Positions 25,974-64,000 of a DNA stretch of 64,000 bases are shown here, in pieces. The DNA comes from Rebecca billardiae RCC1528 (lineage: Eukaryota > Protista > Haptophyta): positions 2,542,001-2,606,000 of the forward strand of contig OZ251227.1 of the NCBI GenBank assembly GCA_965240325.2, read 5' to 3'. Numbering within the stretch: the first letter of the stretch is position 1; each line of letters opens with the position of its first letter. The position numbers and the translations under genes are program-made. The notes below the pieces were generated by a model. That model saw only the letters and a program-made list of their open reading frames with translations. It made no database searches and was not told where the DNA came from.

Positions 25974-28900
25974 TCACTCCTCCTCCTCCTCCTCCTCCTC
26001 CTCGGGCGAGGAGCCGCCGCCGCGCCGCCGCTCGCCTGCGGCGGACATCGCCGCCACGCGCCACGCGCTGAAGAGCGCGCGGCCCGTGCTGTGCCGGATG
26101 AGCTCCTTGAGCGCGGCGCGCAGCGTGAGCACCTGCGCGTACCGGCGCACCTCGGCGCTCTGCTCGGCGGTCGCCGCCTTCCAGCTGCGAGCGGCGCGGC
26201 GGGCGCGCGGATGGCGGGGACGGTCGGGCGGGCGGCGGGCGCGTGAGCGGGGGCGCGGCGGCGGTGCGCGGCGCGCAGGCGCGCGCGCGGGGGGGGAAGG
26301 GGGGGTGCGGGTGCGCGCGCACGCACCTGGCGTACAGCCGCCACTGGCCGAGGCGCGCGCGCAGCAGCGCGCGGATCTCTGCGCGGCTCGGCGCGCTTGG
26401 CAGCCGGCGCTTGCGGCGCGCGGTCTCCGCCCACGTGTGGAGCGCCTGCTGCGCGGCGCTGAGCTGCAGGTAGCGCGCGCGCACGGTCGCGGCGCGCGCG
26501 CGCGAGCCGAGCCACGCCGCCTGCATGCCCGGCGTGCGGTGCAGGCTCGGCACGCGCGCGCTCGCCAGCTCAACCGTCGAGATTGCGATGAGCTGCGCCA
26601 CGCGCGCGCCCCGCAGCCACGCGCCGAGCGCCGCGCCGCCCGCGCGCAGCCGGTGCAGCTGCGCGCTCGCCGCGGCCTGCTCGGCGGCGGCGCGGCGGTA
26701 GAGGGCGAAGAGGTACCAGCGGCGCAGGCCGACGGTGCAGCCGTGCCGCGCGCGCCGGCTCGCCAGCGCGCCGCGCCCCGCCGCGCGCCGCGCGCCCGCG
26801 CGCCACGCCGCGAGCGCGGTGCGCTGCGCGGCGCGCGCCACCGTGTCGGCGCGCGCGGCGCGCGCGAGCTGCCGAGCGCGCTCGCGCGCGAGCGCGGCGG
26901 TGCGCCGCCAGCGGCGCAGCGCGCGGAGCGCGCGGCGGCGGTCGGCCGTGCCCGCGTGCGCGCGCGCGCGCGACGACGCCGAGAGCACCCGCTTCCACGA
27001 GCGCATCGCCGCGAGCGTCGCGCGCAGCTCCGAGCGGACGGTGACCGCGGCCGCGCGCTGCAAGGTGCGCGTTGCCGCGGCCGCGGCGGCGCGCCACGTG
27101 GCCAGCGCGGCGCGCAGCGCGGCGGCGGCGGCGGCGTCTTCGGCGCGGCGCGCGGCGTCGTCGGCGGGCGCGCGCGCCGTGCGCGCGCGCCACGCGCGCA
27201 GCGCCGCGCGCGCGGGCGCGCGCAGGCCGCGCGCGAGCCGCGCGGCGGCGGCGGCGCGCGGCGCGGCGCGCGCCGCCCAGCCGCCGAGCGCGCCGCGCCG
27301 CGCGAGCCGCGCGCGGCCGCGGTCGGCGGTGCGCGCGAGCGCGGCGGTGAGCGCGCCCGCCGTGGCGCGCGAGTGCCACGCGTCGAGCGCGGCCGACGCC
27401 GCGCTCCGCGCCCAGCCGCCCTCGCCCAGCCGGCCGAGGCCGGCGGCGCGCGCGGCGGCCGCCCAGCGCGCCCACGCGGCGCGCAGCGCGCCGGCCGCGC
27501 GGTGGTCAGCGGCGACCATCCTCGCGGCGTCCGCGCCGACCTGCGCGCCGATCGCGTCGACCCAGCGGCCGAAGAGGCGGCCCACGTCGGAGGCGGACGA
27601 CGCGTCCGCGCCGCGCGCGTGCAGGTACGCGGCTCGCCGCGCCGCCGCCCACGCCGCCCACGCGGCGCGCGCGGCGCGCGCGCGCCAGCGCGCCGCGGCG
27701 GCGCGCGCGCGCGCGGACGCAGCGTGCGCGCGCTCGCCGTGCGCGCGCCAGCCCTCGAGGGCGTCGGCGCGCGCCATCGAGCGCCAGAGCGAGGCGGCGA
27801 GCGCGGCGCGCCGCGCGACCGACGTCGCGTGGCGCCACGGGCGCAGCGCGCGCGCCTGACCGAGCGCGCGCCACGCGCGCGCGGCGCGCGCGCCGAGCGC
27901 GGCGCGGCGCGAGGCGTCGCGCCAGCGCGCGAGCGCGCCGCGCGCGCCGCCCGCGGCGCGCAGCGCGCCGAACGCGCGCGCGCCGCGCTCGACGGCGGCG
28001 CGCGCGCGCGCGCGGCGCAGCGCGGCGGCGCGCAGCGCCCAGCGGTCCAGCGCGCCCGCGCTCGCGCGCAGCCGCGCGTGCTCCGCGCTCAGAGTCCGGA
28101 TGGACGCCTCGACGAGCCCGAGCGCTACCCAGTCCTGCCACAGCGAGAAGGCGAGAAGCAGCGGCGGCGTGCGGAAGCGCGCGGCGCGCGCCTCGCGCCG
28201 CGCCTCGCGCGCCTCGCGCGAGTGGTCGCGCCGCCAGCGGCGCAGCGCGGCGCTGGACGCGCCGATCCCCGCCATCTCCGCCGCCGCGCCCAGCTGCGCG
28301 CGCGCCGTGCGCCGCAGCGCGGCGTGCGCGCGCAGGCGCGCCCACGCGGCGCGCGCGTCGCGCGCGGCCGACGCGCCGCGCGCGCGCGCGCGCAGCGCGG
28401 CGGCGAGCCGCCAGAAGCGCCAGCTCGAGGCGGCCTCGGCGGCGCGCCAGCGCGCGGCGGCGCGGCGCGCGCGCTCGAGCGCGAGCGACCGCGCCCCGTG
28501 CGACGCGGCCCAGCCGTCCAGCGCGCGCGCCGCGCGGCCCGCGCGCACGCGGCGGAGCGCGCGACGCGCGCTCGCCGCGCGCCGCGCCGCGCGCGCCCAC
28601 TCGGACCACGACGCCGCGCGCCCGCCCGCCGCCCACTGCTCGGCGGCGGCGGCGGCGGCGGCGCGCGCGCGCGCGCGCGCGCGCGCGCCAGCACCCCAGC
28701 GCGCCAGCGCGCCGCGCTCCGCGCCGCGGCCGACGCCGGTGCGCCGCATCAGCGCAAGCTCGGCGGCGCGCGCCGCCCAGCCGCCGAGCGCGCGCGCGCT
28801 CGCGAGCCGAGCCCACCGGCCGAGCGCGGCGCCGAGCGCGGCGCGCGCGGCGGCGCGGCGGCGGTGGTCGTCGCGCCACGCGTCGAAGAGCCGCGCCGTC

Positions 28901-31900
28901 GCGCCGCCCGCCCAGCCGCGCCCGCCCGCGCGCAGCAGCGCGGCGCGGCGCGCGCCGCGCGCCCAGCCGCCGAACGCGCCGCGGAGCGCGCGCGCCGACC
29001 ACGCGTCGGCGGCAATTAGGCGCGTCGCGTCCGCCTCGACCTGCGCGCCGATGGCGTCGAGCCACGCGCCGAAGAGGCGCGCGGTCTCGCCGTGCGCGAA
29101 CGCCTGCGCCGCGCGCCGCGTCAGCCGCTCGCGCGCCAGCCCGCCGCGCCACGCCTGCAGCGCGCCGCGCGCCGCGCGCGCCGACCAGTGCGCGAGCGGG
29201 CGCGCGAGCGCGGCGAGCGCGCCGCGCCGCGCGCGCGCGCTCTCGCGCCACGCGTCGAAGAGCCGCGCAGAGGCGCCGTGCGACCAGTCGCGCGCGCCGC
29301 GCCGGACCAGCGCGCGCTGACGCGCGCTCGCCGCCCAGCCGCCGAACGCGCCGCGCGCCGCGCGCGAGCCGAGCCGCTCGGCCGCGCGCGATCGCGCGGC
29401 GTCGCGCGCCGCCGCGTCGCGCGACGACTGCGCCCACGCGTGGAACAGCCGCGCGGCCTCGCCGTGCGAGAAGGCCTGCGCCGCGCGCAGCCGCGCGGCG
29501 TACAGCGCGCGCGCCTCGCGCCAGCCGCGCCACGACGCGAGCAACGAGCGCTGCTCCCAGTGCGACAGCGGCGTCGCCAGGGCGGCCGTCGCCGCGTTGC
29601 GCCGCGCCACGTCCTCGCGCCACGCGTCGAAGAGCCGGCCGAGCGCGCCGTGCGCCGCGCGCCGCGCGGCCTGCTGCATCAGCCCACGCTCGCGTGCAGC
29701 TCCGGCCCAGCCATTGAACGCCGCGATCTCCGCGCGCCGCGCCATGCGCTCGCTCGCACGCTCCAACGTCGCGAGCGAGGCGCGCGTCTCGCGCGTGTAG
29801 TCCGACCACGCGTGGAAGAGCCGCGCAGACTCGCCGTGCGCAAAGCCCTGCGCCGCGCGCTGGCGGAGCGCGCGCGTCTCGCGCGCCGACCGCCAATCAC
29901 GCCACGACGCGCGCAGCTGCCGATCCGACCAGTGCTCGAACGGCGCCGCGAGCGCGGCCGACGCGGCGGCACGGCGAGCCGTGTCGTCGCGCCACGCGTC
30001 GAACACGCGCCCGACCGGGCCGAACGCAGCGCCGCGCGCCGCCTGCTGCATGAGCGCGCGCTGGCGCGCGCCGTGCGCCCAGCCGGCAAACGCCAGCCGC
30101 GGGCCGCGCTGCTGCCAGCGCTGCGTCGCCGCCAGACGCGCCGACTCGGCGTCCGCGCGCGCACGCGCAGCAGCCACCCACGCGTGGTACAGCCGCGCGC
30201 TCTCGCCGTGCGTGAACGCCTGCACGCCGCGCTGCTGCGTGCGCAGCGCGCGCGCACTCGCGTGCCAGCCGCGCCACGCCGAGCGCAGCGCGCGCCGCGA
30301 CCAGTGCTCGAACGGCGTCGCGAGCGCCGCGCGCGCCGCCTCGAGCTCGCGCAGCAGGCCTGCCCACGTCGAGAACGCACGCAGCGTCTCGACGTGCGCG
30401 AACGCGCGCACACCCGCGAGCGCGAGCGACTGCAAGCGGGCGTGGTCCGCCCACGCGTGGTACAGCCGCGCGGACTCGCCGTGCATGAACGCCTGCGCCG
30501 CGCGCCGCTGCAGATACTCCATGTCGCGCGCCTCGCGCCAGCCGCGCCACGACGCGAGCAACGAGCGCTGCTCCCAGTGCGACAGCGGCGTCGCCAGGGC
30601 GGCCGTCGCCGCGTTGCGCCGCGCCACGTCCTCGCGCCACGCGTCGAAGAGCCGGCCGAGCGCGCCGTGCGCCGCGCGCCGCGCGGCCTGCTGCATCAGC
30701 CCACGCTCGCGTGCAGCTCCGGCCCAGCCGTTGAACGCCGCGATCTCCGCGCGCCGCGCCATGCGCCCACTCGCATGCTCCAGCACCGCCATCGAATGGA
30801 GAATCTCGCGCGTGTAGTCCGACCATGCGTGGAAGAGCCGCGCAGACTCGCCGTGCGCAAAGCCCTGCGCCGCGCGCTGGCGGAGCGCGCGCGTCTCGCG
30901 CGCCGACCGCCAGTCACGCCACGACGCGCGCAGCTGCCGATCCGACCAGTGCTCGAACGGCGCCGCGAGCGCGGCCGACGCGGCGGCACGGCGTGCCGTG
31001 TCGTCGCGCCACGCGTCGAACACGCGCCCGACCGGGCCGAACGCAGCGCCGCGCGCCGCCTGCTGCATGAGCGCGCGCTGGCGCGCGCCGTGCGCCCAGC
31101 CGGCAAACGCCAGCCGCGGGCCGCGCTGCTGCCAGCGCTGCGTCGCCGCCAGACGCGCCGACTCGGCGTCCGCGCGCGCACGCGCAGCAGCCACCCACGC
31201 GTGGTACAGCCGCGCGCTCTCGCCGTGCGTGAACGCCTGCACGCCGCGCTGCTGCGTGCGAAGCGCGCGAGCACTCGCGTGCCAGCCGCGCCACGCCGAG
31301 CGCAGCGCGCGCCGCGACCAGTGCTCGAACGGCGTCGCGAGCGCCGCGCGCGCCGCCTCGAGCTCGCGCAGCAGGCCTGCCCACGTCGAGAACGCACGCA
31401 GCGTCTCGACGTGCGCGAACGCGCGCACACCCGCGAGCGCGAGCGACTGCAAGCGGGCGTGGTCCGCCCACGCGTGGTACAGCCGCGCGGACTCGCCGTG
31501 CATGAACGCCTGCGCCGCGCGCCGCTGCAGATACTCCATGTCGCGCGCCTCGCGCCAGCCGCGCCACGACGCGAGCAACGAGCGCTGCTCCCAGTGCGAC
31601 AGCGGCGTCGCCAGGGCGGCCGTCGCCGCGTTGCGCCGCGCCACGTCCTCGCGCCACGCGTCGAAGAGCCGGCCGAGCGCGCCGTGCGCCGCGCGCCGCG
31701 CGGCCTGCTGCATCAGCCCACGCTCGCGTGCAGCTCCGGCCCAGCCGTTGAACGCCGCGATCTCCGCGCGCCGCGCCATGCGCCCACTCGCATGCTCCAG
31801 CACCGCCATCGAATGGAGAATCTCGCGCGTGTAGTCCGACCATGCGTGGAAGAGCCGCGCAGACTCGCCGTGCGCAAAGCCCTGCGCCGCGCGCTGGCGG

Positions 31901-43900: not shown

Positions 43901-44133
43901 GACGCGGTCGAGGCGGCGCGCCAGCGCTGCGCGCCCGCGAGCAGCAGGTGGCGCGCGCGCGCCGCGAGCGCCCAGCGCCCGAGCGCCTCGGCGGCCGCGT
44001 CGGCGCGCCACGCCGCCACGCCGCCGGCCAGCAGGCGCGCGCCGCGCGCCGCCTCTCGCCAGCGCGAGAAGGCGGCGCGCGTGCGGCGCACGCCCGCGCG
44101 GAACACACGCACACTCACAGACACAGCACTCAT
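25974..44133 (-). CDS. Giant Sfi1-like repeat protein B (~6005 aa; putative centrin-binding filament); exons 44133-26327, 26184-25974
   Basis: Uninterrupted Ala/Arg-rich helical ORF with (F/W/Y)xxW every 29 or 33 aa, matching the Sfi1 consensus style Ax7LLx3F/Lx2W(K/R). Terminal intron 26326-26185 (GTGCGT...TCGCAG) leads to a poly-Glu tail and TGA. The first ATG is at 44133 if this is a separate gene. Confidence 0.75.
29510..38692 (-). repeat. 9 tandem copies of a 1017-bp (339-aa) coding super-repeat
   Basis: Equivalent shadow ORFs recur at 29981, 30998, 32015, 33032, 34049, 35066, 36083, 37100 and 38117 (period 1017). Confidence 0.97.
39473..42412 (-). repeat. ~2.1 tandem copies of a 1389-bp (463-aa) coding unit
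   Basis: Offsets 39829/41218, 40044/41433 and 40541/41930. Confidence 0.93.
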
Positions 44134-44514
44134 CACGCGCGCGGCCTGAGACGTCGAGTGGCCACGCAGAGCGCGCGCGTGGCGCGGTTGAGCGCGCGCG
44201 GCGGCGCGCGGGCGTGCGCCGTGCCGCTTCCTTCCCCCGCTCCCCAGCCCTCCTCCCTCCCTGCCCCCGCGTGCACGCCGCAGCGCACGCGCCCACACAC
44301 GGACTGGCGTGTCGTGGGTGCGGGCGTGTGCGCGCGTGCATGTGCACGCGTGTGTGTCGTGTGTGCGTGTGCGTCGCGCGGGCGGCCCATCCCCGGCCGC
44401 CCGCGCGCGCCCCCTCCCCGCCCCGCGTGCGCGCCGCCCCCGAGCAGCCCCGCGGGCGAGCGGTCGAGCGGCCCCCGCTGGGCTGGGCCCGCCCGCCCGC
44501 CCAACCCACCCCAA

Positions 44515-44534: not shown

Positions 44535-44538
44535 CCCC

Positions 44539-47500
44539 TCACTCCAGCTGCTCGGGCAGCGACCACTGCACCCGCCACGCGTCGAACACGTGCCGGAGCG
44601 CGCACGCGCGGCTCCACTTGCGGAGCGCGCGCGTGTACGCGCCGAACACGGTCAGCGCGCGGAGCAGCGCGCCGCGCTCCGCCACCGCGCTCGCGTACAG
44701 CGCAAACACCACCCACGCGCGCACCGCACCCCGCGCGCGCGCGCGGTTGGTTACCTCCTCCCAGCGCGCAAAGCGCGGCCCGGCGAGCACGCGCGTCGCG
44801 ATGGCGTCCGGGGCGGCGAGGAGGTACGCGGCGGCGACGTGGCGCGCCCAGCGGCGCCACGCGGCGCGCGACGCCGCGTGCCGCCGGTGCGCGCGCGTCG
44901 CGCCGCGCAGCTCGCGCGCCACCGCCCGCAGCGAGACGGCGTCGAGCCAGACGCCGAGCGCGGCCGCGAGCCGGCGTCGTAGCGCGCGCCGCGCGCTCGC
45001 GGGCGCCGCGGCCGCGGCGCGCGTGCGCGCCGCGGCGCGCGAGCCCGCCGCCCAGCCGGCGAACGCGCGCGCCGCGTCGCCCAGCTCGCGCACGGCGGCC
45101 GCGTGCGTCAGCCGCGTCGCCGCGTCGCCCTGCGCGCGCGCGCGCGCGCGCCACGCGCCGAGCGCGCCGCCGAGCCGGCTCACCGCCAGGAGGAGGGCGA
45201 CGCCGCGCGCGCGCTCGCGCGACACGTCGCGGTAGCGCGCGTAGAGCTGCCAGCGCATCACGCCGCGCGAGGCGGCGGTGAAGCGGCCGTACAGCCCGCT
45301 CTGCGCCAGCTGCGCCGACGCCACGCGCGCGTACGAGTGCCGCAGCCGCCACAGCTCGAGCGCGTCGCGCGCCGTGCGCGCGGCGTCGCGCGCCGACGCG
45401 CCGCGGCCTGCGCGGCCGGCGCGCGCCGCGCCCGCGAGCGTGTTGAAGCCGCGCCACAGCGCGGCGCGGAGGAGGCGGCGCGCGCCGAGCGCGGCGCGCG
45501 CGCGCAGCGCGCGCGTGCGCCGCCAGCCCGCCCACGACTCGCGCTGCGCGCCCGCCGACCAGCGGCGCGCCGCGCGGCGCAGCAGGCCGCCAGCGGCCGC
45601 GGCCGCGGCGGCGTGCGCGGCCCACGCGCGCAGCGCGTGCGCGGCGCGCGGCCGGTGCAGCCGCTGCGCGGCGCGGCGCGCGAGCGCGCGCGGCGCGGTG
45701 GCCGCGCGCAGCGTGCGCGCCGCGCGCGCCAGCGAGGCGTGCCGCCAGCGCAGCGCCGCCGCGGCGAGCACCGCGCCCGCGCCGTGCGAGCGCTCCACCC
45801 ACGCGCGCCACGCGTCGAGCGCGCGCGCGGGCGCGCTGAGCCGCCAGCGCGAGAGCGCGAAGTGGGCGCGGCGGCCGAGCGCGCCGGCGGCGCGCAGCGC
45901 GCGCCACGCGCCGCCGAGCGCGCCCGCGCGCCAGCCGCGCGCCGCGCGCGAGCCCAGCCGCGTCGCGCGCGCCACCTGCCGCCACGCGCCGAACGAGGCG
46001 CGGCGCGAGAGCGCGCCGCGCGCCTCGCCCGTGAACGCGCGCGCGGCGCGCAGCGCGCGCGCGCGCGCGCGCCAGCGCAGCAGCGCGAGGCGCAGCGCGG
46101 CGGCGGCCGACTGCACGCGCAGCGCGCTGGGCAGCGCGCGCGCCGCCGCCGCGTGCGTCCGCCACGCGCGCCAGCCGCCGCGCAGCGCCGCGCTGCGGCC
46201 CACGCCGAGCGCGCGCCGCGCGAGCGCGAGCCCGCGCGACGTCGCGCCGAGCCACGCGCGCAGCGCGCCGCCCGCCGCGCCGTGCTGCCAGCGCAGCACC
46301 GACGCGGCGAGGACGGCGCGCAGCCCGTGCACCAGCTCGACGTGCGTGCGCCACTGCTCGAGCGCGCGCGCCGGGCCGAGCCGCGCGGCGCGCGCGAGCG
46401 CGCGCCGCTGCAGCCGCTCGGCGCGGCCGCGCGCGGCCCAGCCGGCCCACGTGGTGCCCAGCAGCTGCCCCGACCAGTGCGAGGCGGCGGCGGCGGCGGC
46501 GGCGCGCGCGCGGCGCGCGGCGCGCGCGCGCGGCGCCCACGCGCGCAGCGCGCGCGCCTCGGCGGCGCGCGCCCACGTGCGCGCGCTCGCGCGCAGCTGC
46601 AGCAGCGCGGCCGTGCGCGCCGCCCACGCGCGCCACGCGGCGTGCACCGAGCCGAGCTCCCAGCGCACCATCGCGCCCGTCGCGGCCACGAGGCGGCGCC
46701 AGCGCGCCGCGGCCCAGCCGCGCCACGCGTCGAAGGCGAGCGCGGCGGGGCCCGCGACGAGCACGCGCGCGCCCGCGCGCTGCGTGCGCCGCGCCGCACC
46801 GAACGCGAGCCACGCGCGCCACGCGCCGCCGAGCGCGCCCGCCGCCCAGCGGCCGAGCGCGCGCCGCGCCGCGGCGCGCGCGGCGGCGCGGCGGCGGTGG
46901 CCGTCGCGCCACGCGTCGAAGAGGCGCGCCGTCGCGCCGTGCGCCCAGTCGCGCGCCGAGCGGCGCAGCAGCGCGCGCTCGCGCGCGCCCGCCGCCCAGC
47001 CGTCGAACGCCGCGTGCTGCGCGCGCATCGACCAGCGGCCGAGCGACGCGCCGAGCGTCGCGCGCGCGCCGCGCGCCGCGCGCGCGCCCCGCACCCAGCG
47101 GTGGAAGAGGCGCGCGCTCTCGCCGTGCGCGAGCGCCTGCGCCGCGCGGCGGTGCAGCGCGCGCGAGCGCGCGCGCGCCGCCCAGCCGTCGAACGCCGCC
47201 GCCTGCGCGCGCAGCGTCCACCGGCCGAGCGAGCGGCGCAGCGCGGCGCGCGCGCCGCCGACGAGGCGCGCGCCGGCCGCCCACGCGCCGAACAGCCGCG
47301 CGGCCTCGCCGCCGAGGAAGGTGCGCGCGCCGCGCAGCAGCAGCGCGCGCGACGCCGCCTCGGCGGCCCAGCTGCGCCACGACGCGCGGATCGAGCGCTG
47401 CGACCAGTGCGCCACCGTCGTCGCGAGCGCGCGCCGCGCCGCCGACGCGCGGCGCCCGCTCGCGCGCCAGCCGTCGAGCGCGCGGCCGAGCGGGCCGCGC

Positions 47501-56500: not shown

Positions 56501-59500
56501 ACGCGCATCCGCTCGAGGGCGAACTCGGCGAGCACGCTCCACGCGCCGTCGATCGCGGCGGTGCGCCAGCGGCGCAGCGCGGCGGCGAGCGCGGCGCGCA
56601 GCGCGGCGCGGCGCGCGGCGGCGTGCGTCCAGCGCGCAAACGCGCGCGCGGGCGCGCCCAGCCTCCACATGGCGAGCGCGAAGCGCGCGCGCCGGCCGAG
56701 CGCGCCGCCGTCGGCGAGCGCGCGCCACGCGCCGACGAGCCCGCGGCCGCGCCAGCGCGCGGCGGCGCGCGCGAGCAGCGCCTCGCGCGGCGTGCGCGCG
56801 GGCGGCGCGCTCGCCCAGCGCAGCAGCGCGCGCGCCTCGGCGCGGCGGCGCAGCCGCGCGCCCGCGCGCCGCGCCGCCGCGCGCGCGCTCGCCGCCGACG
56901 CCCACGCGCTCAGCGCCGGCCGCGCGAGCAGCGTCGCGGCGCGCGGCCGGCGGCCGCGCGCGCGGCCGGCGGCGCGGCGCGCGGCGACCGCCACGCGGCC
57001 GAACGCCGCGGCGCGCGCGCGGCCGACGCGGCGCTCGTCGAGCGCCGCGTCGAGCGCGGCGACGAGCACCGCCGCGCGCGCGCGGTCGCGCCAGCAGCCG
57101 AGCGCGAGCGCGCTCGCCGTCGCCGCGTACGCGCGCCGCGCGCGCGCGCGCTCGCGGCCGCGCGCCGCGCGGCGCGCCCAGCGCGCGAGCGCGCGCGCGC
57201 TCGCGAGCGCGGCGCGCAGCGCGTCGGCGTCGGCGAGGCGCGCGCGCGCGGCGCGCGCGAGCGCGAGCCCCGCCGCCCAGACGCGCAGCGCGCGCGCGCT
57301 CTCGCGCGCGCGCGCGCCCACCAGCGCGCGCGTCGCCGCGTGCCCGACGGCGCGCAGCCGCGCGCCGGCGCGCAGCCGCGCCCACGCGCGGCCGAGCGGC
57401 GCGCCGAGCGGCGCGCCGGCGCGCGCGAGCAGCGCGCGCGCCGCGCCGCGCGCGGCGGACGCGGCGCGCCACGCGCGCAGCGCGCGAGCGGGCGCGGCGC
57501 GGCGCAGCGCGAGCGCGCTGCGGCGCAGCACGCCGCCCACGCGCGCGGCCGCCGCCCAGCCGCCAAACGCGACGTGCTGCGCGCGCATCGACCAGCGGCC
57601 GAGCGACAGCCGCAGCGCGGCGAGCGCGACGCCGACGCGGAGCGCGGCGTCCGCCCAGCGCAGGAAGAGCCGCGCGGTCTCGCCGTGCGCCCAGTCGCGC
57701 GCCGCGCGGCGCAGCAGCGCGCGCGCGCGCGCGCCCGCCACCCAGCCGTCGTACGCCGCCGCCTGCGCGCGCACCGCCCAGCGGCCGAGCGCGCGCGCGG
57801 CGCGCGCGCGCAGCGCCGAGCCGGCGGCCCAGCGGTCGAACGCGCGCGCGCTCGCGCCCGCGCGCCAGCGCGCCGCGCTCGAGTGGAGCAACCGACGCGC
57901 GTGCGCGACGTCGGCCCACGAGCGCCACGCGCGGTGCGACGCGGAGAGCTCCCATCGCGCCGCGACGCTCGCGGCGCGCGCGAGGAGGTCAAAGTGCGCG
58001 CGCGTGCTCGCCGCCCAGCCGTCGAACGCGGCCGCGGCCGGGCCGGAGACGAGCGCGCGCGCGCCCGCGCGCAGCCGGCGGCGGTCGTCGGCGTGCGCGA
58101 GCCACGCGCGCCACGCGCGGCCGTGCGCGGCGCGGATCCAGCGGCCGAGCGCGCCGCCCGCCGCGGCGAGCGCCGCGCCGCGCCGCCGGTGGTCGTCGCG
58201 CCACGCGTCGAAGAGCCGGCCCTGCGCGCCGTGCACCCAGCTGCGCGCCGCGCGCCGCGTGAGCGCGCGCTCGCGCGCGCGCGCCGCCCAGCCGTCGAAC
58301 GCGGCGGCCTGCGAGCGCAGCGTCCACCGGCCGAGCGACGCGCCGAGCGACGCGCGCGCCTCGCCCAGCGCGCGCGCGCCGCGCGCCCACGCGCCGAAGA
58401 GCCGCGCGCTCTCGCCGTGCAGGAACGTGCGCGCGCCGCGCAGCAGCAGCGCGCGCGACGCCGCCTCGGCGTCCCAGCTGCGCCACGACGCGCGCAGCGA
58501 GCGCTGCGACCAGTGCGCCACCGTCGCGCCCAGCGTCGCGCGCATCGCCTCCCTCGCGCGGTGGTCGTCGCGCCACGCGTCGAAGAGGCGGCCGAGCGCG
58601 CCGTGCGCCGCGCGCCGCACCGCGAGCCGCATGAGCCCGCGCGAGCGCGCGCCGTGCGCCCAGCCGCCAAACGCGGCGTGGAGCGCGCGCTGCGACCACC
58701 GACCCGCGGCGGGCTCGAGCAGAGCGAGCGCCTCGCGCAGCGCGCGCGCCCAGTCGAGCCAGCCGAGGAACGCGCGGCCCAACCCGCCGGTCATCGCGAT
58801 CACGAGGGCACGCCGCCGCAGCTGCAGCGCGCGCGCCTGGTCCGCCCACGCCGCCCACGAGCTCCGCAGCGATTGCGCCGCCCAGCGCTCGACCGAGGCG
58901 TCGAGCGTGCGCAGCGCGGAGGCGCGCGCCGCGCTGAACTCCGTCCAGCACGAGAGCGCGCGCGCGAGCGCGCCGCCGACAAAGAGGCGCACGCCCGTGC
59001 GCAGCAGCCGCGCGCCCGACGCGCCCTGCTCCCACGAGCGCCACGCGCGGAGCAGCGCCGACAGCTCCCAGCGCGCGACGACGCCCGCGGCAACCGCGAG
59101 CACGGACAGCTCGGTCTCAGTGAGCAGCTTCCACGCGCCAAACGCAACGCCGACGCCGGCGACCTCCTTGAGAGCGGTCGCGCCGGCGAGCAGGCTGGCG
59201 CGCTGCGCCGCGAAGGCCGTCCACGCGCGCCACGCGCGGCCCTGCGCCATCGAGGCGAACGCGCGCGCCGGCGCGGCGAGCAGCTCGCGCGCGCGCGCCA
59301 GCTCGGCCACGCCCGCGCGCCACACGTCAAAGAGCCGCGCCTGCGCGCCGTGCACCCAGTCGCGCGCCGAGCGGCGCAGCAGCGCGAGCCCGCGCGTGTT
59401 CGCCGCCCAGCCCGCAAACGCGAACGACTGCGAGCGCTTCGACCAGCGGCCGAGCGCCGTGCCCAGCGTGCCGCGAGCGTCGCGCACCGCGCGCGCGCCG

Positions 59501-62500
59501 GACACCCAGCGGTGGTACAGCCGCGCCGACTCGCCGTGCACAAACGCCTGCGCGGAGCGACGCGCGAGCGCGCGCTCGCGCGCGCGCGCCGCCCAGCCGT
59601 CGAACGCGGCGGCCTGCGCGCGCAGCGTCCACCGGCCGAGTGATGCGCCGAGCGAGGCGCGCGCGTCGCCCAGCGCGCGCGCGCCCAGCGCCCACGCGCG
59701 GAAGAGCCGCGCGCTCTCGCCGTGCAGGAACGTGCGCGCGCCGCGCAGCAGCAGCGCGCGCGACGCCGCCTCCGCGTCCCAGCTGCGCCACGACGCGCGC
59801 AGCGAGCGCTGCGACCAGTGCGCCACCGTCGCGCCCAGCGTCGCGCGCATCGCCTCCCTCGCGCGGTGGTCGTCGCGCCACGCGTCGAAGAGCCGCGCCT
59901 GCGCGCCGTGCGTGAACGTGCGCACGGCGCGCCGCACGAGCCCGCGCTCGCGCGCGTTCTCCGCCCAGCCGCCAAACGCGGCGTGCAGCGTGCGCTGCGA
60001 CCACCGACCCGCGGCGGGCTCGAGCAGAGCGAGCGCGTCGCGCAGCGCGCGCGCCCAGTCGGACCAGCCGAGGAACGCGCGAGCCAGGCCGCCCTTCATC
60101 GCGACCACGAGGGCGCGCCGCTGCAACTCGCGCGCGCGCACCTCGGACGCCCACAGGGACCACGTCGCCAGCAGCGACCCCGCCGCCCAGCGCTCGACAG
60201 AGGAGTCGAGCGTGCGCAGCGCGGAGGCGCGCGCGGATGAAAACTCCATCCAGCACAAGAGCGCGCGCGCGAGCGCGCCGCCGATGAAGCGGCGCACGCC
60301 AGAGCGCAGTAGCTGCGCGCGCGACGCGGCCTCGTCCCACGAGCGCCACGCCTTGTGCACCGAGGCCAGCTCCCAGCGCACCATCACCACGGCCGCGCGC
60401 TCGAGCACGGAGAGCTGCGCCACTGCCGTCCGCTTCCATGACGCGAACGCAAAGCCAACGCCCGTGACGGGGCCCTCGGCGAGCGCGGTGGCGGCGGACA
60501 TGAGCTGCGCGCGCTGCATCGCGAACACAGTCCACGAACGCCACGCGCGGCCCTGCGCCATCGAGGCGAACGCGCGCGCCGGCGCGGCGAGCAGCTCGCG
60601 CGCGCGCGCCAGCTCAGCCACGCCCGCGCGCCACACGTCAAAGAGCCGCGCCTGCGCGCCGTGCACCCAGTCGCGCGCCGAGCGGCGCAGCAGCGCGCGC
60701 CCGTGCGCGTTGTCCGCCCAGCCCGCAAACGCGAACGACTGCGAGCGCTTCGACCAGCGGCCGAGCGCCGTGCCCAGCGTGCCGCGAGCGTCGCGCACCG
60801 CGCGCGCGCCGGATACCCAGCGGTGGTACAGCCGCGCCGACTCGCCGTGCACAAACGCCTGCGCGGAGCGACGCGCTCGCGCGCGCTCGCGCGCGCGCGC
60901 CGCCCAGCCGTCGAACGCGGCGGCCTGCGCGCGCAGCGTCCACCGGCCGAGTGACGCGCCGAGCGACGCGCGCGCGTCGCCCAGCGCGCGCGCGCCGAGC
61001 GCCCACGCGCGGAAGAGCCGCGCGCTCTCGCCGTGCAGGAACGTGCGCGCGCCGCGCAGCAGCAGCGCGCGCGACGCCACCTCCTCGTCCCAGCTGCGCC
61101 ACGACGCGCGCAGCGAGCGCTGCGACCAGTGCGCCACCGTCGCGCCCAGCGTCGCGCACATCGCCTCCCTCGCGCGGTGGTCGTCGCGCCACGCGTCGAA
61201 GAGCCGCGCCTGCGCGCCGTGCGTGAACGTGCGCACGGCGCGCCGCACGAGCCCGCGCTCGCGCGCGTTCTCCGCCCAGCCGCCAAACGCGGCGTGCAGC
61301 GTGCGCTGCGACCACCGTCCGGCCGCGGGCTCGAGCAGCGACAGCGCGTCGCGCAGCGCGCGCGCCCAGTCGGACCAGCCGAGGAACGCGCGAGCCAGGC
61401 CGCCCTTCATCGCGACCACGAGGGCGCGCCGCTGCAACTCGCGCGCGCGCACCTCGGACGCCCACAGGGACCACGTCGCCAGCAGCGACCCCGCCGCCCA
61501 GCGCTCGACAGAGGAGTCGAGCGTGCGCAGCGCGGAGGCGCGCGCGGATGAAAACTCCATCCAGCACGAGAGCGCGCGCGCGAGCGCGCCGCCCATGAAG
61601 CGGCGCACGCCAGAGCGCAGCAGCTGCGCGCGCGACGCGGCCTCGTCCCACGAGCGCCACGCCTTGTGCACCGAGGCCAGCTCCCAGCGCATCATCACCA
61701 CGGCCGCGCGCTCGAGCACGGACAGCTGCGCCACCGCCGTCCGCTTCCACGACGCAAACGCAAAGCCCACGCCCGTGACGGGGCCCTCCACGAGCGCGGT
61801 GGCGGCGAACATGAGCTGCGCGCGCTGCGTCGCGAACACAGTCCACGCGCGCCACGCGCGGCCCTGCGCCATCGAGGCGAACGCGCGCGCCGGCGCAGCG
61901 AGCAGCTCGCGCGCGCGCGCCAGCTCGGCCACGCCCGCGCGCCACACGTCAAAGAGCCGCGCCTGCGCGCCGTGCACCCAGTCGCGCGCCGAGCGGCGAA
62001 TGAGCGCGAGCCCGCGCGCGTTCACCGCCCAGCCCGCGAAGGCGCGGTGCTGCGAGCGCTTCGACCAGCGGCCGAGAGCGACGTCCAGCGTGCCGCGCGC
62101 CGCGGCGCTCCGCCGGTGGTCGTCGCGCCACGCGTCGAAGAGCCGCGCCTGCGCGCCGTGCACCCAGCTGCGCGCCGCGTGCCGTGCGAGGGCGCGCTCG
62201 CGCGCGCGCGCCGCCCAGCCGTCGAACGCGGCGTGCTGCGCGCGCAGCGTCCACCGGCCGAGTGACGCGCCGAGCGACGCGCGCGCCTCGCCCAGCGCGC
62301 GCGCGCCGAGCGCCCACGCGCGGAAGAGCCGCGCGCTCTCGCCGTGCAGGAACGTGCGCGCGCCGCGCAGCAGCAGCGCGCGCGACGCCGCCTCCGCGTC
62401 CCAGCTGCGCCACGACGCGCGCAGCGAGCGCTGCGACCAGTGCGCCACCGTCGCGCCCAGCGTCGCGCGCATCGCCTCCCTCGCGCGGTGGTCGTCGCGC

Positions 62501-64000
62501 CACGCGTCGAAGAGCCGCGCCTGCGCGCCGTGCGTGAACGCGCGCACGGCGTGCCGCACGAGCCCGCGCTCGCGCGCGTTCTCCGCCCAGCCGCCAAACG
62601 CTGCGCGCAGCGTGCGCTGCGACCACCGCCCGGCGGCGGGCTCGAGCAGCGACAGCGCCTCGCGCAGCGCGCGCGCCCAGTCGGACCAGCCGAGGAACGC
62701 GCGAGCCAGGCCGCCCTTCATCGCGACCACGAGGGCGCGCCGCTGCAACTCGCGCGCGCGCACCTCGGCCGCCCACAGGGACCACGTCGCCAGCAGCGAC
62801 CCCGCCGCCCAGCGCTCGACAGAGGAGTCGAGCGTGCGCAGCGCGGAGGCGCGCGCCGCGCTGAACTCCATCCAGCACGAGAGCGCGCGCGCGAGCGCGC
62901 CGCCCATGAAGCGGCGCACGCCAGAGCGCAGCAGCTGCGCGCGCGATGCGGCCTCGTCCCACGAGCGCCACGCCTTGTGCACCGAGGCCAGCTCCCAGCG
63001 CACCATCACCACGGCCGCGCGCTCGAGCACGGACAGCTGCGCCACCGCCGTCCGCTTCCACGACGCGAACGCAAAGCCCACGCCCGTGACGGGGCCCTCC
63101 ACGAGCGCGGTGGCGGCGAACATGAGCTGCGCGCGCTGCGTCGCGAACACAGTCCACGCGCGCCACGCACGGCCCTGCGCCATCGAGGCGAACGCGCGCG
63201 CCGGCGCGGCGAGCAGCTCGCGCGCGCGCGCCAGCTCGGCCACGCCCGCGCGCCACACGTCAAAGAGCCGCGCCTGCGCGCCGTGCACCCAGTCGCGCGC
63301 CGAGCGGCGCAGCAGCGCGCGCCCGTGCGCGTTGTCCGCCCAGCCCGCAAACGCGAACGACTGCGAGCGCTTCGACCAGCGGCCGAGCGCCGTGCCCAGC
63401 GTGCCGCGAGCGTCGCGCACCGCGCGCGCGCCGGATACCCAGCGGTGGTACAGCCGCGCCGACTCGCCGTGCACCAACGCCTGCGCGGAACGACGCGCGA
63501 GCGCGCGCTCGCGCGCGCGCGCCGCCCAGCCGTCGAACGCGGCGTGCTGCGCGCGCAGCGTCCACCGGCCGAGCGACACGCCGAGCGACGTGCGCGCCTC
63601 GCCCAGCGCGCGCGCGCCGAGCGCCCACGCGCGGAAGAGCCGCGCGCTCTCGCCGTGCAGGAACGTGCGCGCGCCGCGCAGCAGCAGCGCGCGCGACGCC
63701 GCCTCCGCGTCCCAGCTGCGCCATGATGCGCGCAGCGAGCGCTGCGACCAGTGCGCCACCGTCGCGCCCAGCGTCGCGCGCATCGCCACCTTCGCGCGGT
63801 GGTCGTCGCGCCACGCGTCGAAGAGCCGCGCCTGCGCGCCGTGCGTGAACGTGCGTACGGCGCGCCGCACGAGCCCGCGCTCACGCGCGTTCTCCGCCCA
63901 GCCGCCAAACGCGGCGTGCAGCGTGCGCTGCGACCACCGACCCGCCGCCGGCTCGAGCAGCGACAGCGCGTCGCGCAGCGCGCGCGCCCAGTCGGACCAG
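44539..64000 (-). CDS. Giant Sfi1-like repeat protein A (>6480 aa, 5'-truncated by the window edge)
   Basis: The frame is open from 64000 to TGA at 44539-44541, with the same periodic (F/W)xxW repeats (RLFDAWR, AAFDGWA, ASWRSWD). It may instead splice to protein B. Confidence 0.75.
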   Translation of the reverse strand, partial: WSDWARALRDALSLLEPAAGRWSQRTLHAAFGGWAENARERGLVRRAVRTFTHGAQARLFDAWRDDHRAKVAMRATLGATVAHWSQRSLRASWRSWDAEAASRALLLRGARTFLHGESARLFRAWALGARALGEARTSLGVSLGRWTLRAQHAAFDGWAARARERALARRSAQALVHGESARLYHRWVSGARAVRDARGTLGTALGRWSKRSQSFAFAGWADNAHGRALLRRSARDWVHGAQARLFDVWRAGVAELARARELLAAPARAFASMAQGRAWRAWTVFATQRAQLMFAATALVEGPVTGVGFAFASWKRTAVAQLSVLERAAVVMVRWELASVHKAWRSWDEAASRAQLLRSGVRRFMGGALARALSCWMEFSAARASALRTLDSSVERWAAGSLLATWSLWAAEVRARELQRRALVVAMKGGLARAFLGWSDWARALREALSLLEPAAGRWSQRTLRAAFGGWAENARERGLVRHAVRAFTHGAQARLFDAWRDDHRAREAMRATLGATVAHWSQRSLRASWRSWDAEAASRALLLRGARTFLHGESARLFRAWALGARALGEARASLGASLGRWTLRAQHAAFDGWAARARERALARHAARSWVHGAQARLFDAWRDDHRRSAAARGTLDVALGRWSKRSQHRAFAGWAVNARGLALIRRSARDWVHGAQARLFDVWRAGVAELARARELLAAPARAFASMAQGRAWRAWTVFATQRAQLMFAATALVEGPVTGVGFAFASWKRTAVAQLSVLERAAVVMMRWELASVHKAWRSWDEAASRAQLLRSGVRRFMGGALARALSCWMEFSSARASALRTLDSSVERWAAGSLLATWSLWASEVRARELQRRALVVAMKGGLARAFLGWSDWARALRDALSLLEPAAGRWSQRTLHAAFGGWAENARERGLVRRAVRTFTHGAQARLFDAWRDDHRAREAMCATLGATVAHWSQRSLRASWRSWDEEVASRALLLRGARTFLHGESARLFRAWALGARALGDARASLGASLGRWTLRAQAAAFDGWAARARERARARRSAQAFVHGESARLYHRWVSGARAVRDARGTLGTALGRWSKRSQSFAFAGWADNAHGRALLRRSARDWVHGAQARLFDVWRAGVAELARARELLAAPARAFASMAQGRAWRSWTVFAMQRAQLMSAATALAEGPVTGVGFAFASWKRTAVAQLSVLERAAVVMVRWELASVHKAWRSWDEAASRAQLLRSGVRRFIGGALARALLCWMEFSSARASALRTLDSSVERWAAGSLLATWSLWASEVRARELQRRALVVAMKGGLARAFLGWSDWARALRDALALLEPAAGRWSQRTLHAAFGGWAENARERGLVRRAVRTFTHGAQARLFDAWRDDHRAREAMRATLGATVAHWSQRSLRASWRSWDAEAASRALLLRGARTFLHGESARLFRAWALGARALGDARASLGASLGRWTLRAQAAAFDGWAARARERALARRSAQAFVHGESARLYHRWVSGARAVRDARGTLGTALGRWSKRSQSFAFAGWAANTRGLALLRRSARDWVHGAQARLFDVWRAGVAELARARELLAAPARAFASMAQGRAWRAWTAFAAQRASLLAGATALKEVAGVGVAFGAWKLLTETELSVLAVAAGVVARWELSALLRAWRSWEQGASGARLLRTGVRLFVGGALARALSCWTEFSAARASALRTLDASVERWAAQSLRSSWAAWADQARALQLRRRALVIAMTGGLGRAFLGWLDWARALREALALLEPAAGRWSQRALHAAFGGWAHGARSRGLMRLAVRRAAHGALGRLFDAWRDDHRAREAMRATLGATVAHWSQRSLRASWRSWDAEAASRALLLRGARTFLHGESARLFGAWARGARALGEARASLGASLGRWTLRSQAAAFDGWAARARERALTRRAARSWVHGAQGRLFDAWRDDHRRRGAALAAAGGALGRWIRAAHGRAWRAWLAHADDRRRLRAGARALVSGPAAAAFDGWAASTRAHFDLLARAASVAARWELSASHRAWRSWADVAHARRLLHSSAARWRAGASARAFDRWAAGSALRARAARALGRWAVRAQAAAYDGWVAGARARALLRRAARDWAHGETARLFLRWADAALRVGVALAALRLSLGRWSMRAQHVAFGGWAAAARVGGVLRRSALALRRAAPARALRAWRAASAARGAARALLARAGAPLGAPLGRAWARLRAGARLRAVGHAATRALVGARARESARALRVWAAGLALARAARARLADADALRAALASARALARWARRAARGRERARARRAYAATASALALGCWRDRARAAVLVAALDAALDERRVGRARAAAFGRVAVAARRAAGRARGRRPRAATLLARPALSAWASAASARAAARRAGARLRRRAEARALLRWASAPPARTPREALLARAAARWRGRGLVGAWRALADGGALGRRARFALAMWRLGAPARAFARWTHAAARRAALRAALAAALRRWRTAAIDGAWSVLAEFALERMRVRVSIIELRSGGLRRALRGWEAGAAARRGAASLRAAGTRWRHAATAAALGAWRAAAPPRRAAALLRAGAAAFLRAPLGASLQRLRAHARAELGVRARAAAVLVRWELARMVGSWRAWREAEDARRRAAACARRWRAGALGGALRALRGAAAAARARRGAFGAALRRLAAGTRGAAFGAWRRAALGGRARAALGARAGARLAHGAAARALGTWRDAAAARRGAAAVLRGAAARWAAGARGAALAGWRAGAADRALARLIAPIAPSHALARALARWAVAATLARVLASQLGSSALLDARGALGAALLRARRAARLLALTRAQLASSATFCALKAEAAALGAWFRHAARARQTRARSGLARLRVLEAGFGVWLESLEARAVSRALLLATARHWAMRAEARALGAWRARGEAAAFSAALRGGARRAARRFAASTLGAHHAHWARAARARRAARAFRAHARRLRASWAAWNLVALARALDALGARARRGAALPAALGRWAALGRSRALRARALGRWAHARCAAAWRAWRGAHGRAERARAMLGAALGRWARLERARALGGWAARARARARLAAGVRALREPPALRALGTWRGRAAARLDLLSRVGGVVSRRELARLGGAWAAWLARGARADLLRTAAARWHGGALGGALGAWHGAARAARAARATLDAAARDWRGAARRGSWRGWREAARLRRLTRRAALALARGAAGRGFGAWARAAPRLGGARGAGALAARRWSMRALAAGFDGWRAGARARRLMAGGARGWLRGAQARAFDGWRGRVAARRALGAALAHWGSRELRGSWAGWREAARLRSLQLRAARTLAHGESARLLCAWARHAARLRGAAAALRLSLGRWSLRSQAAAFGGWAQNARARGLLRRAARGWARGALGRLFDAWRGALAERAALRAALGGAVRSWAGGAPRRALAAWAAAGRARGLVRRAAREWSRGAPGRLFDAWRAALARRAAALATADAVLARWASGALAGAWRRLRAALARERVHARAAQAFLHGESARLFGAWAEGARAVRGARAALGAALGRWSLRAQAAGFDGWRAGARARRLMAGGARGWLHGARARAFDGWRADARARAALRATLAHWASRALRASWAGWRAEERGARLQARAAQALAHGEAARLFHAWADGARRVGGARAALGAAVRRWTPRSRAAAFGGWAASARARGLARRAARGWVHGAQGRLFDAWRDDHRRRASARAALARPLAHWARGSVASAWRAWRANGALAALRLRAARAFLGGEAARLFGAWAAGARRVGGARAALRRSLGRWAESAAGAAFARWAARGRAERLQRRALARAARLGPARALEQWRTHVELVHGLRAVLAASVLRWQHGAAGGALRAWLGATSRGLALARRALGAGRGAALRGGWRAWRTHAAAARALPSAARSAAAALRLALARWRARARALRAARAFTGEARGALSRRASFGAWRQVARATRLGSRAARGWRAGALGGAWRALRAAGALGRLARYALALRHLDAPARALDAWRAWVERSHGAGAVLAAAALRWRHAALARGARTLRAATAPRALARRAAQRLAARGAAAAFRPWAARAVDARAARALARGALAIWARRAPAAAWRAWCAAADARRDADSLARGVAVQLLSPQRVAFAEWAARAARAEGVRARAARALVRWELAAAVATFNAWAAAAAAHASMRAATLAWQHGAWARALARWRWRARGAARAAAVGARSLGRWALRSQAAALGGWAQNARARGLLRRAARGWARGALGRLFDAWRGALAERAALRAALGGAVRSWAGGAPRRALAAWAAAGRARGLVRRAAREWSRGAPGRLFDAWRAALARRAAALATADAVLARWASGALAGAWRRLRAALARERVHARAAQAFLHGESARLFGAWAEGARAVRGARAALGAALGRWSLRAQAAGFDGWRAGARARRLMAGGARGWLHGARARAFDGWRADARARAALRATLAHWASRALRASWAGWRAEERGARLQARAAQALAHGEAARLFHAWADGARRVGGARAALGAAVRRWTPRSRAAAFGGWAASARARGLARRAARGWVHGAQGRLFDAWRDDHRRRASARAALARPLAHWARGSVASAWRAWRANGALAALRLRAARAFLGGEAARLFGAWAAGARRVGGARAALRRSLGRWAESAAGAAFARWAARGRAERLQRRALARAARLGPARALEQWRTHVELVHGLRAVLAASVLRWQHGAAGGALRAWLGATSRGLALARRALGAGRGAALRGGWRAWRTHAAAARALPSAARSAAAALRLALARWRARARALRAARAFTGEARGALSRRASFGAWRQVARATRLGSRAARGWRAGALGGAWRVLRAAGALGRLARYALALRHLDAPARALDAWRAWVERSHGAGAVLAAAALRWRHAALARGARTLRAATAPRALARRAAQRLAARGAAAAFRPWAARAVDARAARALARGALAIWARRAPAAAWRAWCAAADARRDADSLARGVAVQLLSPQRVAFAEWAARAARAEGVRARAARALVRWELAAAVATFNAWAAAAAAHASMRAATLAWQHGAWARALARWRWRARGAARAAAVGARSLGRWSMRSQHAAFGGWAQNARARGLLRRAARGWARGALGRLFDAWRGALAERAALRAALGGAVRSWAGGALRRALAAWAAAGRARGLVRRAAREWSRGAPGRLFDAWRAALARRAAALATADAVLARWASGALAGAWRRLRAALARERVHARAAQAFLHGESARLFGAWAEGARAVRGARAALGAALGRWSLRAQAAGFDGWRAGARARRLMAGGARGWLHGARARAFDGWREVVAARRAALGGATRALGRWLMRAQAAALGRWAASARELSLLRRSAGGWARGALGRLFDAWRDDHARRADALGAARATLAHWGARALRGSWAGWRAEVRGARLHARAAQALAHGEAARLFHAWADGARRVGGARAALGAAARRWARRGPAAALDGWREGARARGLQQRAATLFAHGPSAALFARWAAAARMLGGLRRAARGLARGPLGRALDGWRASGRRASAARRALATTVAHWSQRSIRASWRSWAAEAASRALLLRGARTFLGGEAARLFGAWAAGARLVGGARAALRRSLGRWTLRAQAAAFDGWAARARSRALHRRAAQALAHGESARLFHRWVRGARAARGARATLGASLGRWSMRAQHAAFDGWAAGARERALLRRSARDWAHGATARLFDAWRDGHRRRAAARAAARRALGRWAAGALGGAWRAWLAFGAARRTQRAGARVLVAGPAALAFDAWRGWAAARWRRLVAATGAMVRWELGSVHAAWRAWAARTAALLQLRASARTWARAAEARALRAWAPRARAARRARAAAAAAASHWSGQLLGTTWAGWAARGRAERLQRRALARAARLGPARALEQWRTHVELVHGLRAVLAASVLRWQHGAAGGALRAWLGATSRGLALARRALGVGRSAALRGGWRAWRTHAAAARALPSALRVQSAAAALRLALLRWRARARALRAARAFTGEARGALSRRASFGAWRQVARATRLGSRAARGWRAGALGGAWRALRAAGALGRRAHFALSRWRLSAPARALDAWRAWVERSHGAGAVLAAAALRWRHASLARAARTLRAATAPRALARRAAQRLHRPRAAHALRAWAAHAAAAAAAGGLLRRAARRWSAGAQRESWAGWRRTRALRARAALGARRLLRAALWRGFNTLAGAARAGRAGRGASARDAARTARDALELWRLRHSYARVASAQLAQSGLYGRFTAASRGVMRWQLYARYRDVSRERARGVALLLAVSRLGGALGAWRARARAQGDAATRLTHAAAVRELGDAARAFAGWAAGSRAAARTRAAAAAPASARRALRRRLAAALGVWLDAVSLRAVARELRGATRAHRRHAASRAAWRRWARHVAAAYLLAAPDAIATRVLAGPRFARWEEVTNRARARGAVRAWVVFALYASAVAERGALLRALTVFGAYTRALRKWSRACALRHVFDAWRVQWSLPEQLE
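48108..53950 (-). repeat. ~2.3 tandem copies of a 2580-bp (860-aa) coding unit
   Basis: Offsets 48171/50751/53331 and 50052/52632; the lines are nearly identical by eye. Confidence 0.93.
59219..64000 (-). repeat. At least 3.6 tandem copies of a 1311-bp (437-aa) coding unit, with a degenerate copy extending to ~58200
   Basis: Offsets 59327/60638/61949/63260, 60384/61695/63006 and 59722/61033/62344. Confidence 0.92.

Follow-up and report, generated by a model that had tools for sequence, protein, structure and literature searches.

Giant tryptophan-repeat reading frames of Sfi1 type in the haptophyte Rebecca billardiae and a putative centrin filament

Two giant repeat reading frames on the minus strand

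The genomic stretch analysed here comprises 64,000 nucleotides of the haptophyte Rebecca billardiae RCC1528 (GenBank assembly GCA_965240325.2, contig OZ251227.1, positions 2,542,001 to 2,606,000; hereafter the window, numbered from its first letter). Its minus strand carries two successive giant open reading frames (ORFs), here called A and B, that share a single frame, contain no internal stops, and encode long series of repeats that each end in Trp (Table 1). A preliminary description of this stretch had claimed two such consecutive Trp-repeat ORFs, and the giant pair is confirmed by the shared frame, by the period of the Trp residues, and by the coverage of both proteins with a hidden Markov model (HMM) of the repeat. 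The size given there for ORF B, more than 6,480 amino acids (aa), holds, since 6,486 codons lie within the window and the 5' end lies beyond its edge, making the protein longer than 6,486 aa; the size given for ORF A (~6,005 aa) required correction to 6,107 aa. Between 25.8 and 64 kb the G+C content is 77-87%, as compared with 62-81% (mostly 65-75%) in the flanks, the latter in keeping with the 73% reported for Diacronema lutheri. The residue make-up of the two proteins is 27-30% Ala, 18-19% Arg, 9-11% Leu, 5-6% Trp, and 5-7% Asp plus Glu, with Pro at 1.0-1.3%.

The Trp residues follow a strict period of 62 aa, made up of 29 + 33 aa, with autocorrelation maxima at 62 and 124 aa; spacings between consecutive Trp are mostly 29, 33, and 21 + 12 aa, and spacings of 30 and 32 aa are minor. 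The 124-aa unit consists of four repeats in the order 33 + 29 + 33 + 29, wherein the 33-mers contain one Pro and an extra Trp at position -12 relative to the terminal Trp and the 29-mers contain an internal His-Gly and end in A-R-L-F/Y-x-A-W. The logo of the repeats shows F, L, or W at -3, L at -7 (40%), A at -8, and A at -16 (45%). When an HMM of the 124-aa super-unit was built by iteration, its matches accounted for 84% of A (5,252 of 6,242 aa) and 91% of B (5,927 of 6,486 aa), equivalent to about 360 repeats of ~31 aa in the two ORFs together. The tandem array that had been described therefore stands, while the count of ~400 repeats that accompanied it is an upper bound, reached when every residue is counted. 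The longest unbroken chain of motif Trp, in steps of 27-33 aa, extends over 155 repeats in ORF A, the first repeats of which begin ~20 aa past the initiating Met. A Pfam scan of the C-terminal 1,000-aa piece of ORF A, which ends at 26500 just upstream of a Pro-rich tail, gave no match. The array of ORF B is well formed at 58-64 kb and degenerate in a zone of 87% G+C at 45.5-58 kb, where the middle of the protein is rich in Ala, Arg, and Gly; a density of 24-32 Trp per 500 aa is held even in this zone.

The junction between the two ORFs, which would be an intergenic spacer or an intron, is in frame with both and contains no stop beyond the TGA of ORF B. An enumeration of possible splices was uninformative, since a junction that keeps the frame and lacks further stops allows 164 in-frame GT/GC-AG pairs; among the donors is a GTGAGG that overlaps the stop of ORF B and has 7 acceptor partners. 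As judged from the sequence, A and B may be two tandem genes rather than one spliced gene, although the balance tips only modestly in that direction; the lean toward two genes follows from the order of the elements, namely the stop of B, then sequence of non-coding type, then an ATG at the start of the next array. Homology between the C-terminal tails of A and B, which would favour two complete paralogues, was sought and not detected (BLASTP E = 3.1). The telomere-type units that directly follow the stop of ORF B could be telomeric sequence at an interstitial site, the scar of a repair event, or a sign of mis-joining.

Table 1. Features of the locus, in window coordinates.
Feature	Start	End	Strand	Remarks
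ORF A, complete giant gene	25810	44133	-	6,107 aa; ATG at 44133, stop at 25810-25812; G+C at codon positions 1/2/3 (GC1/2/3) 0.80/0.68/0.93
ORF A C-terminal tail	25813	26538	-	~240 aa; Pro-rich, Trp-poor, without repeats; last bin with 3 Trp and 27 Pro
ORF A repeat array	27229	44034	-	~170 repeats, including the unbroken chain of 155
1,017-bp (339-aa, 11-repeat) array in ORF A	29500	39000	-	Self-identity 0.96 at lags 1017, 2034, and 3051
Non-coding A/B junction	44134	44538	-	405 nt; G+C flat over codon positions (0.82/0.81/0.76); no repeat units
AC/ACGC-rich microsatellite-like tract	44305	44375	-	In the junction; read from the sequence
Telomere-type GGGTTA/GGTTAG units (four) with G-tracts	44500	44538	-	Directly past the ORF B stop; read from the sequence
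ORF B, 3' part of giant gene	44539	64000	-	6,486 codons in the window; stop TGA at 44539-44541; GC1/2/3 0.83/0.72/0.98; 374 Trp
ORF B repeat array	44809	63999	-	~190 repeats of 29/33 aa, from the HMM domain table and per-bin counts
2,580-bp duplication in ORF B	47500	58000	-	Self-identity 0.65 at lag 2580; recurring HMM domain pattern
1,311-bp (437-aa) units in ORF B	58000	64000	-	Self-identity 0.79 at lag 1311 and 0.73 at 2622
Antisense ORF overlapping ORF B	45103	59643	+	4,846 aa; Arg/Ala/Pro-rich; GC1 0.99
Neighbouring ORF with TPR-like repeats	7631	13018	-	1,795 aa
Low-complexity ORF	15632	19900	+	1,422 aa; 80% GC

Motifs, relatives, and predicted fold

The repeat of Sfi1 was defined by Kilmartin as A-x7-LL-x3-F/L-x2-W-K/R with gaps of 23-35 aa (PMC2173958), and the two ScanProsite patterns used in his own searches were applied here, namely A-x12-[FL]-x2-W-[KRH] (at least 3 per ORF) and [FWL]-x2-W-[KRH]-x21-34-[FWL]-x2-W-[KRH] (at least 2 per ORF). 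The first pattern matched 28 times in A and 43 times in B, as compared with means of 2.4 and 3.1 (maxima 7-8) in shuffled sequences of the same composition, and the second matched 33 and 21 times, as compared with shuffle means of 0.36 and 0.49 (maxima 3-4). The other five frames gave 0-2 matches. The dominant steps of 29 and 33 aa fall inside the Sfi1 spacing range of ~23-36 residues. Moreover, the centrin-docking triad of algal Sfi1, L8-x3-F4-x2-W1 (PMC3871271), is represented in the form L-x3-[L/F]-x2-W by 238 full triads, 125 in A and 113 in B, where shuffles lead one to expect 15 and 21, respectively; about one third of the repeats lack the full triad.

A profile of the 124-aa unit, compared with 1.84 billion representative proteins, recovered 1,454 relatives at E<=1e-3 and 401 at E<=1e-10, most of them matched in many stretches. 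These included 'protein SFI1' of Pseudoscourfieldia marina (E=1.3e-49 over 20 stretches) and the cluster of Micromonas commoda XP_002508586 (4,266 aa; E=9.5e-45 over 31 stretches), which bears the UniRef name 'Sfi1 spindle body domain-containing protein'. Further relatives are 'partial hypothetical' proteins of Pavlovales sp. CCMP2436, a protein of 3,234 aa from Prymnesium parvum, members from Chlorokybus, Chromosphaera, and Picozoa, and a transcript ORF from Teleaulax. The relatives in other species are far less compositionally biased and are matched at the protein level; in the less biased ones, the Trp period is a clean 33 aa, with A/V at -16, L at -7, F/L/W at -3, and R at +1. The longest unstudied algal database entries among the top 150 matches reach 5,055 aa. 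Word-index searches were less productive: a search for homologues with a 1,000-aa piece found none, the query being swamped by low-complexity candidates, and a search with the relative P0008 did not reach the named SFI1 proteins.

The closest relatives of the window protein are those of the Pavlovales, to one of which it is 31% identical over 2,273 aa (E=2e-108). In Pavlovales sp. CCMP2436, contig MU631596.1 carries, from about 22 to 31,050, ~31 kb of homologous repeats on one strand (L001, L003). This array includes ~4 kb of N and frame changes, ends at the contig edge, and is covered in the annotation by three hypothetical proteins that are partial or short; it probably constitutes one or two giant genes that annotation has overlooked. 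Because this locus also spans ~31 kb of repeats, the giant size is conserved within Pavlovales.

Several of the relatives carry other features. P0021, a metagenomic protein of 3,377 aa with a 33-aa Trp period, has genuine EF-hands at either end of the rod, at residues 19-46, 180-206, and ~3344-3366 (Pfam EF-hand_1 at 48.7 bits, with a cutoff of 25.4), so that a Ca2+-binding module and repeats of Sfi1 type occur fused in one natural protein. P0029, a protein of 5,055 aa from a Logan assembly, has an N-terminal kinesin motor domain at residues ~300-450 (E=4.5e-52) in addition to 35 Sfi1-type stretches and could be either a motor-headed rod or a fusion introduced by gene calling. P0208, an unannotated protein of 3,765 aa from Bryopsis sp. 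KO-2023, matches P0008 at E=7.6e-133, and giant Sfi1-type proteins seem to be widespread in green algae as well.

Structure was predicted with AlphaFold2 (AF2) for 248 aa, or eight repeats, using an alignment of 24 rows that included relatives from Pavlovales. The prediction is ~97% helix, with helices of 45-61 residues, each equivalent to 1.5-2 repeats, that are interrupted by single-residue kinks at His-Gly; the mean predicted local distance difference test score (pLDDT) is 70 and the predicted template modelling score (pTM) is 0.23. The prediction fits a kinked rod and by itself is not proof of an Sfi1-like complex. Since each repeat holds one helix-breaker, a compact solenoid of TPR or HAT hairpins, with two short antiparallel helices in each ~34-aa repeat, was considered as a rival fold. 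It is not supported by the AF2 prediction, with its long helices and a pTM of 0.23 that indicates no confident compact fold, and Pfam gave no TPR or HAT matches on six 1,000-aa pieces. Foldseek against the PDB gave no match, a wide structural search with VIA-align returned only generic long helices and coiled coils (Z below 8), and searches of the ESM Atlas by features and by shape returned nothing meaningful (TM score below 0.5).

A putative centrin-coated filament and the alternatives to it

The motifs and the homology, read together, identify A and B as members of the Sfi1 repeat family that fall below the curated threshold of Pfam. The explanation favoured here, which is considered fairly likely, is that A and B are real, coding genes of this family, arranged in tandem or possibly spliced into one, whose products form a putative centrin-coated, Ca2+-responsive filament. 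We infer centrin binding, its stoichiometry, the response to Ca2+, cellular location, and expression by analogy with studied systems. In such a filament, each chain would be a very basic, almost wholly alpha-helical rod with a single kink in every repeat, at a Gly or Pro, and a strongly basic rod would be charge-matched to acidic centrin. The triad at the repeat end, L-x3-[F/L/W]-x2-W, would dock the C-terminal lobe of centrin, as it does in yeast, human, and green-algal Sfi1, and one acidic centrin per repeat would amount to ~170-200 putative sites per chain. With an alpha-helical rise of 0.15 nm per residue, the repeat region of A (~5,600 aa) could measure up to ~0.84 micrometre and the part of B in the window ~0.97 micrometre, kinks and supercoiling shortening both, so that full extension would produce a centrin-coated filament of up to ~0.9-1 micrometre per chain; the ~1.9 micrometres suggested earlier would require a fused product. 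Binding of Ca2+ by centrin would then cause the filament to stiffen, coil, or shorten. The filament would most likely reside in a fibre attached to basal bodies or flagellar roots, which is a likelier place than the haptonema because the haptonema is reduced in Pavlovales. In haptophytes, centrin has been found to surround the basal bodies, and the arrays seen there may be flagellar roots (10.1101/2024.10.18.618984).

A number of observations weigh against this interpretation. First, in Pfam scans that covered six 1,000-aa pieces of the window protein and nine relatives, the Sfi1 model PF08457 (gathering threshold 22 bits) had no match at E<=1 on any of the six window pieces and did not score on the relatives from Micromonas, Prymnesium, and Pavlovales. 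The sole Sfi1 match among the scanned pieces was to P0008 (18 bits, E=0.0012, below the 22-bit cutoff), in a stretch that adjoins, within the Trp array of that protein, the part matched by the repeat profile. Second, the repeat profile and phmmer, run against PDB sequences, found no Sfi1 chain and gave only EF-hand matches to P0021. Third, the SFI1 names on relatives are automatic annotations taken over from the source databases. Fourth, K or R follows only ~31% of motif Trp at +1, where the consensus is W-K/R, and full triads become rarer where ORF B reaches 87% GC. Fifth, purifying selection, expressed as the ratio of nonsynonymous to synonymous differences among repeat copies (pN/pS, 0.64), is only moderate. 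Sixth, sequencing runs were sought for the junction and for a housekeeping neighbour, and none was listed. Lastly, the N-terminus of ORF B, which lies outside the window, could hold a head domain that would alter the interpretation, as the kinesin and EF-hand fusions among the relatives suggest. The earlier classification of the array as an Sfi1-like repeat protein is thus supported by motif enrichment, spacing, predicted helicity, and homology to named SFI1 proteins, and goes unsupported by the Pfam Sfi1 model.

The alternative that fares best, although it is unlikely, accepts a real, giant, helical Trp-repeat protein of the Sfi1 sequence family and assigns to it the role of a passive spacer, ruler, or tether, or that of a very basic rod whose acidic partner is something other than centrin, for example another EF-hand protein, the tails of tubulin, or nucleic acid. 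The minority of repeats with K or R at +1, the many repeats that lack a full triad, and the strongly positive net charge (Arg at 18-19%, Asp plus Glu at 5-7%) are all compatible with such a role, as is the fusion of this family to heads as varied as kinesin and EF-hands, which suggests rods that serve as general tethers. Yet both the triad register and the alternation of 29- and 33-aa steps agree with the centrin-binding unit as established by experiment, the density of Trp remains constant despite extreme GC pressure, and Sfi1-type repeats have bound centrin or spasmin in every case studied.

A second alternative holds that the array is a non-functional or decaying GC-rich sequence, pseudogenised or a runaway-expanded paralogue, with little or no expression and with a frame kept by composition and gene conversion. 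It bears directly on the coding evidence, in which ORF length counts for little because long ORFs arise by chance at 77-87% G+C; at 87% G+C, other frames are nearly free of stops, as seen in the antisense ORF of 4,846 aa and in one other frame of the B region with only 2 stops. The antisense ORF arises from GCN/CGN codons of the opposite strand and is no gene candidate. Its G+C over codon positions is ordered GC1>GC3>GC2, unlike that of ORFs A and B. The case for coding rests instead on periodic Trp, pN/pS, codon-position G+C, and homologues. The pN/pS in the ORF frame (0.64) compares with 1.15-1.42 in the two shifted frames. In both giant ORFs G+C follows the order GC3>GC1>GC2 (0.93-0.98, 0.80-0.83, and 0.68-0.72), and the same order is observed in the neighbouring gene with TPR-like repeats (0.91, 0.71, and 0.49). 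That neighbour, used here as the reference for codon usage, comprises an extended, strongly homogenised array of ~40-aa TPR-like units followed by a C-terminal domain; a further ORF nearby, on the plus strand, contains long tracts of low complexity, namely (GS)n, (HADPGG)n, and Ala-rich ones. When relative synonymous codon usage (RSCU) is compared with that of the neighbouring gene, sense (r=0.80-0.83) and antisense (r=0.87) are not told apart, which leaves room for decay, as do the only moderate pN/pS and the degenerate middle of B. Opposed to decay are the complete lack of stops in 12,700 codons, as compared with 9-53 in the shifted frames of the A region, the maintenance of the Trp (TGG) periodicity throughout, the gene-like order of GC1/2/3, the identity with the Pavlovales protein over 2,273 aa, and the wide distribution of the family, including its transcript-derived member in Teleaulax. 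Decay of the array is therefore regarded as improbable.

The higher-order units at the DNA level (Table 1) are young, so that copy number in these arrays, the near-identical 1,017-bp one included, depends on the assembly. Large parts of the locus, at 39-47.5 kb and 25.9-29.5 kb, consist of unique sequence without strong identity at any lag. An assembly that is wrong in part, in which the genes are real and either the number of units is incorrect or the junction with telomere repeats is mis-joined, would be suggested by the 96% identity of 1,017-bp units over 9.5 kb, by telomere-type repeats exactly at the A/B junction, and by the break of the homologous CCMP2436 locus through ~4 kb of N and frame changes, but it is the least probable of the alternatives given those two unique intervals, a frame that is intact across every unit boundary, and the ~31 kb of repeats in CCMP2436.

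Comparison with known Sfi1-type systems

What had been said initially of yeast, human, and ciliate Sfi1-type proteins agrees with the literature. Canonical Sfi1 has ~20 repeats in ~950-1,250 aa and distinct N- and C-terminal domains, and the repeats of human SFI1 are 33-mers (PMC2173958, PMC2063913). The window proteins resemble Saccharomyces cerevisiae Sfi1p and human SFI1 in their tandem Trp-terminated repeats, spacing of 23-36 aa, triad at W, -3, and -7, low Pro, and predicted long helix, and the 33-aa period of their distant relatives recalls the human 33-mers. They differ from canonical Sfi1 in having ~170-200 repeats per chain, a strict alternation of 29 and 33 aa within 124-aa super-units, an extra Trp at -12 in the 33-mers, K or R at +1 in about one third of repeats, and, in ORF A, almost no terminal domains. 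Each repeat binds one centrin in the Sfi1 of yeast, human, and green algae (PMC2173958, PMC3871271). The Sfi1 proteins of Ostreococcus lucimarinus and O. tauri have 28 and 22 motifs, respectively (PMC3871271). Green-algal Sfi1 (Ostreococcus, Micromonas commoda, Pseudoscourfieldia) shares with the window proteins the L8-x3-F4-x2-W1 triad and a high helix content, while being 1.5 to ~9 times shorter, uniform in its 33-aa period, and milder in composition. A literature search found no study of green-algal Sfi1 proteins as a fibre backbone, and a search for Sfi1 in haptophytes found no paper linking the two.

The closest match in size is with ciliates. Spirostomum GSBP1 and GSBP2 comprise 13,125 and 17,974 aa, with two Pro dividing the 69-aa repeat into 36 + 33; in the ciliate giants, units of centrin and Sfi1 are compacted by Ca2+, which also drives their self-association, and complexes of GSBP with spasmin measure more than 2 micrometres (PMC9946354, 10.1101/2024.11.07.622534, 10.1101/2025.08.11.669701). 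Like the ciliate giants (Spirostomum GSBP, the Stentor Sfi1 family, and Paramecium CenBP), the window proteins have thousands of residues in uninterrupted, intronless frames that are nearly all repeats, conserved Trp, and one helix-breaker per sub-repeat, which would make a kinked rod. Unlike them, the unit here is 62 aa (29 + 33) with a motif of the type A-R-L-F-x-A-W and a G+C content of 77-87%; the ciliate pattern of a 69-aa unit (36 + 33 or 23 + 46) with a KGA[LV]...W[RK] motif in an AT-rich gene is not found in the window ORFs. It should also be noted that the ciliate proteins are backed by mass spectrometry, antibodies, RNAi, and in-vitro compaction by Ca2+. The haptophyte and ciliate expansions are probably independent. 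Giant Sfi1-type backbones in ciliates and algal Sfi1 with 22-28 motifs were thus already known, and what is new is a giant in a haptophyte with a 29/33 grammar of its own.

Centrin was first discovered in the contractile flagellar roots of algae, and of the scaffolds that order centrin into fibres of micrometre length, experiments have so far characterised only the short ones of yeast and human and the giant ones of ciliates. It is possible, and is suggested here only tentatively, that giant rods of Sfi1 type, encoded in tandem, supply the backbone that has long been missing for the centrin fibres of algae and act as an ATP-independent Ca2+ spring or ruler in a flagellate of ~5 micrometres, having evolved independently of the ciliate myoneme proteins. 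Such a putative spring or ruler would link the basal bodies to the nucleus or to flagellar roots on the scale of micrometres.

The genome of a tiny haptophyte thus specifies Sfi1-type chains that exceed 6,000 residues and hold putative centrin sites in their hundreds, and current annotations overlook or fragment genes of this kind, the best public relatives being 'partial hypothetical proteins'. If true, this would be a second, independent expansion from which to learn how the mechanics of a fibre depend on the grammar of its repeats, with a period of 62 aa here and of 69 aa in ciliates. If the rods bind centrin, they would offer a molecular handle on Ca2+-driven, ATP-independent motility and on the positioning of basal bodies in ecologically important algae.

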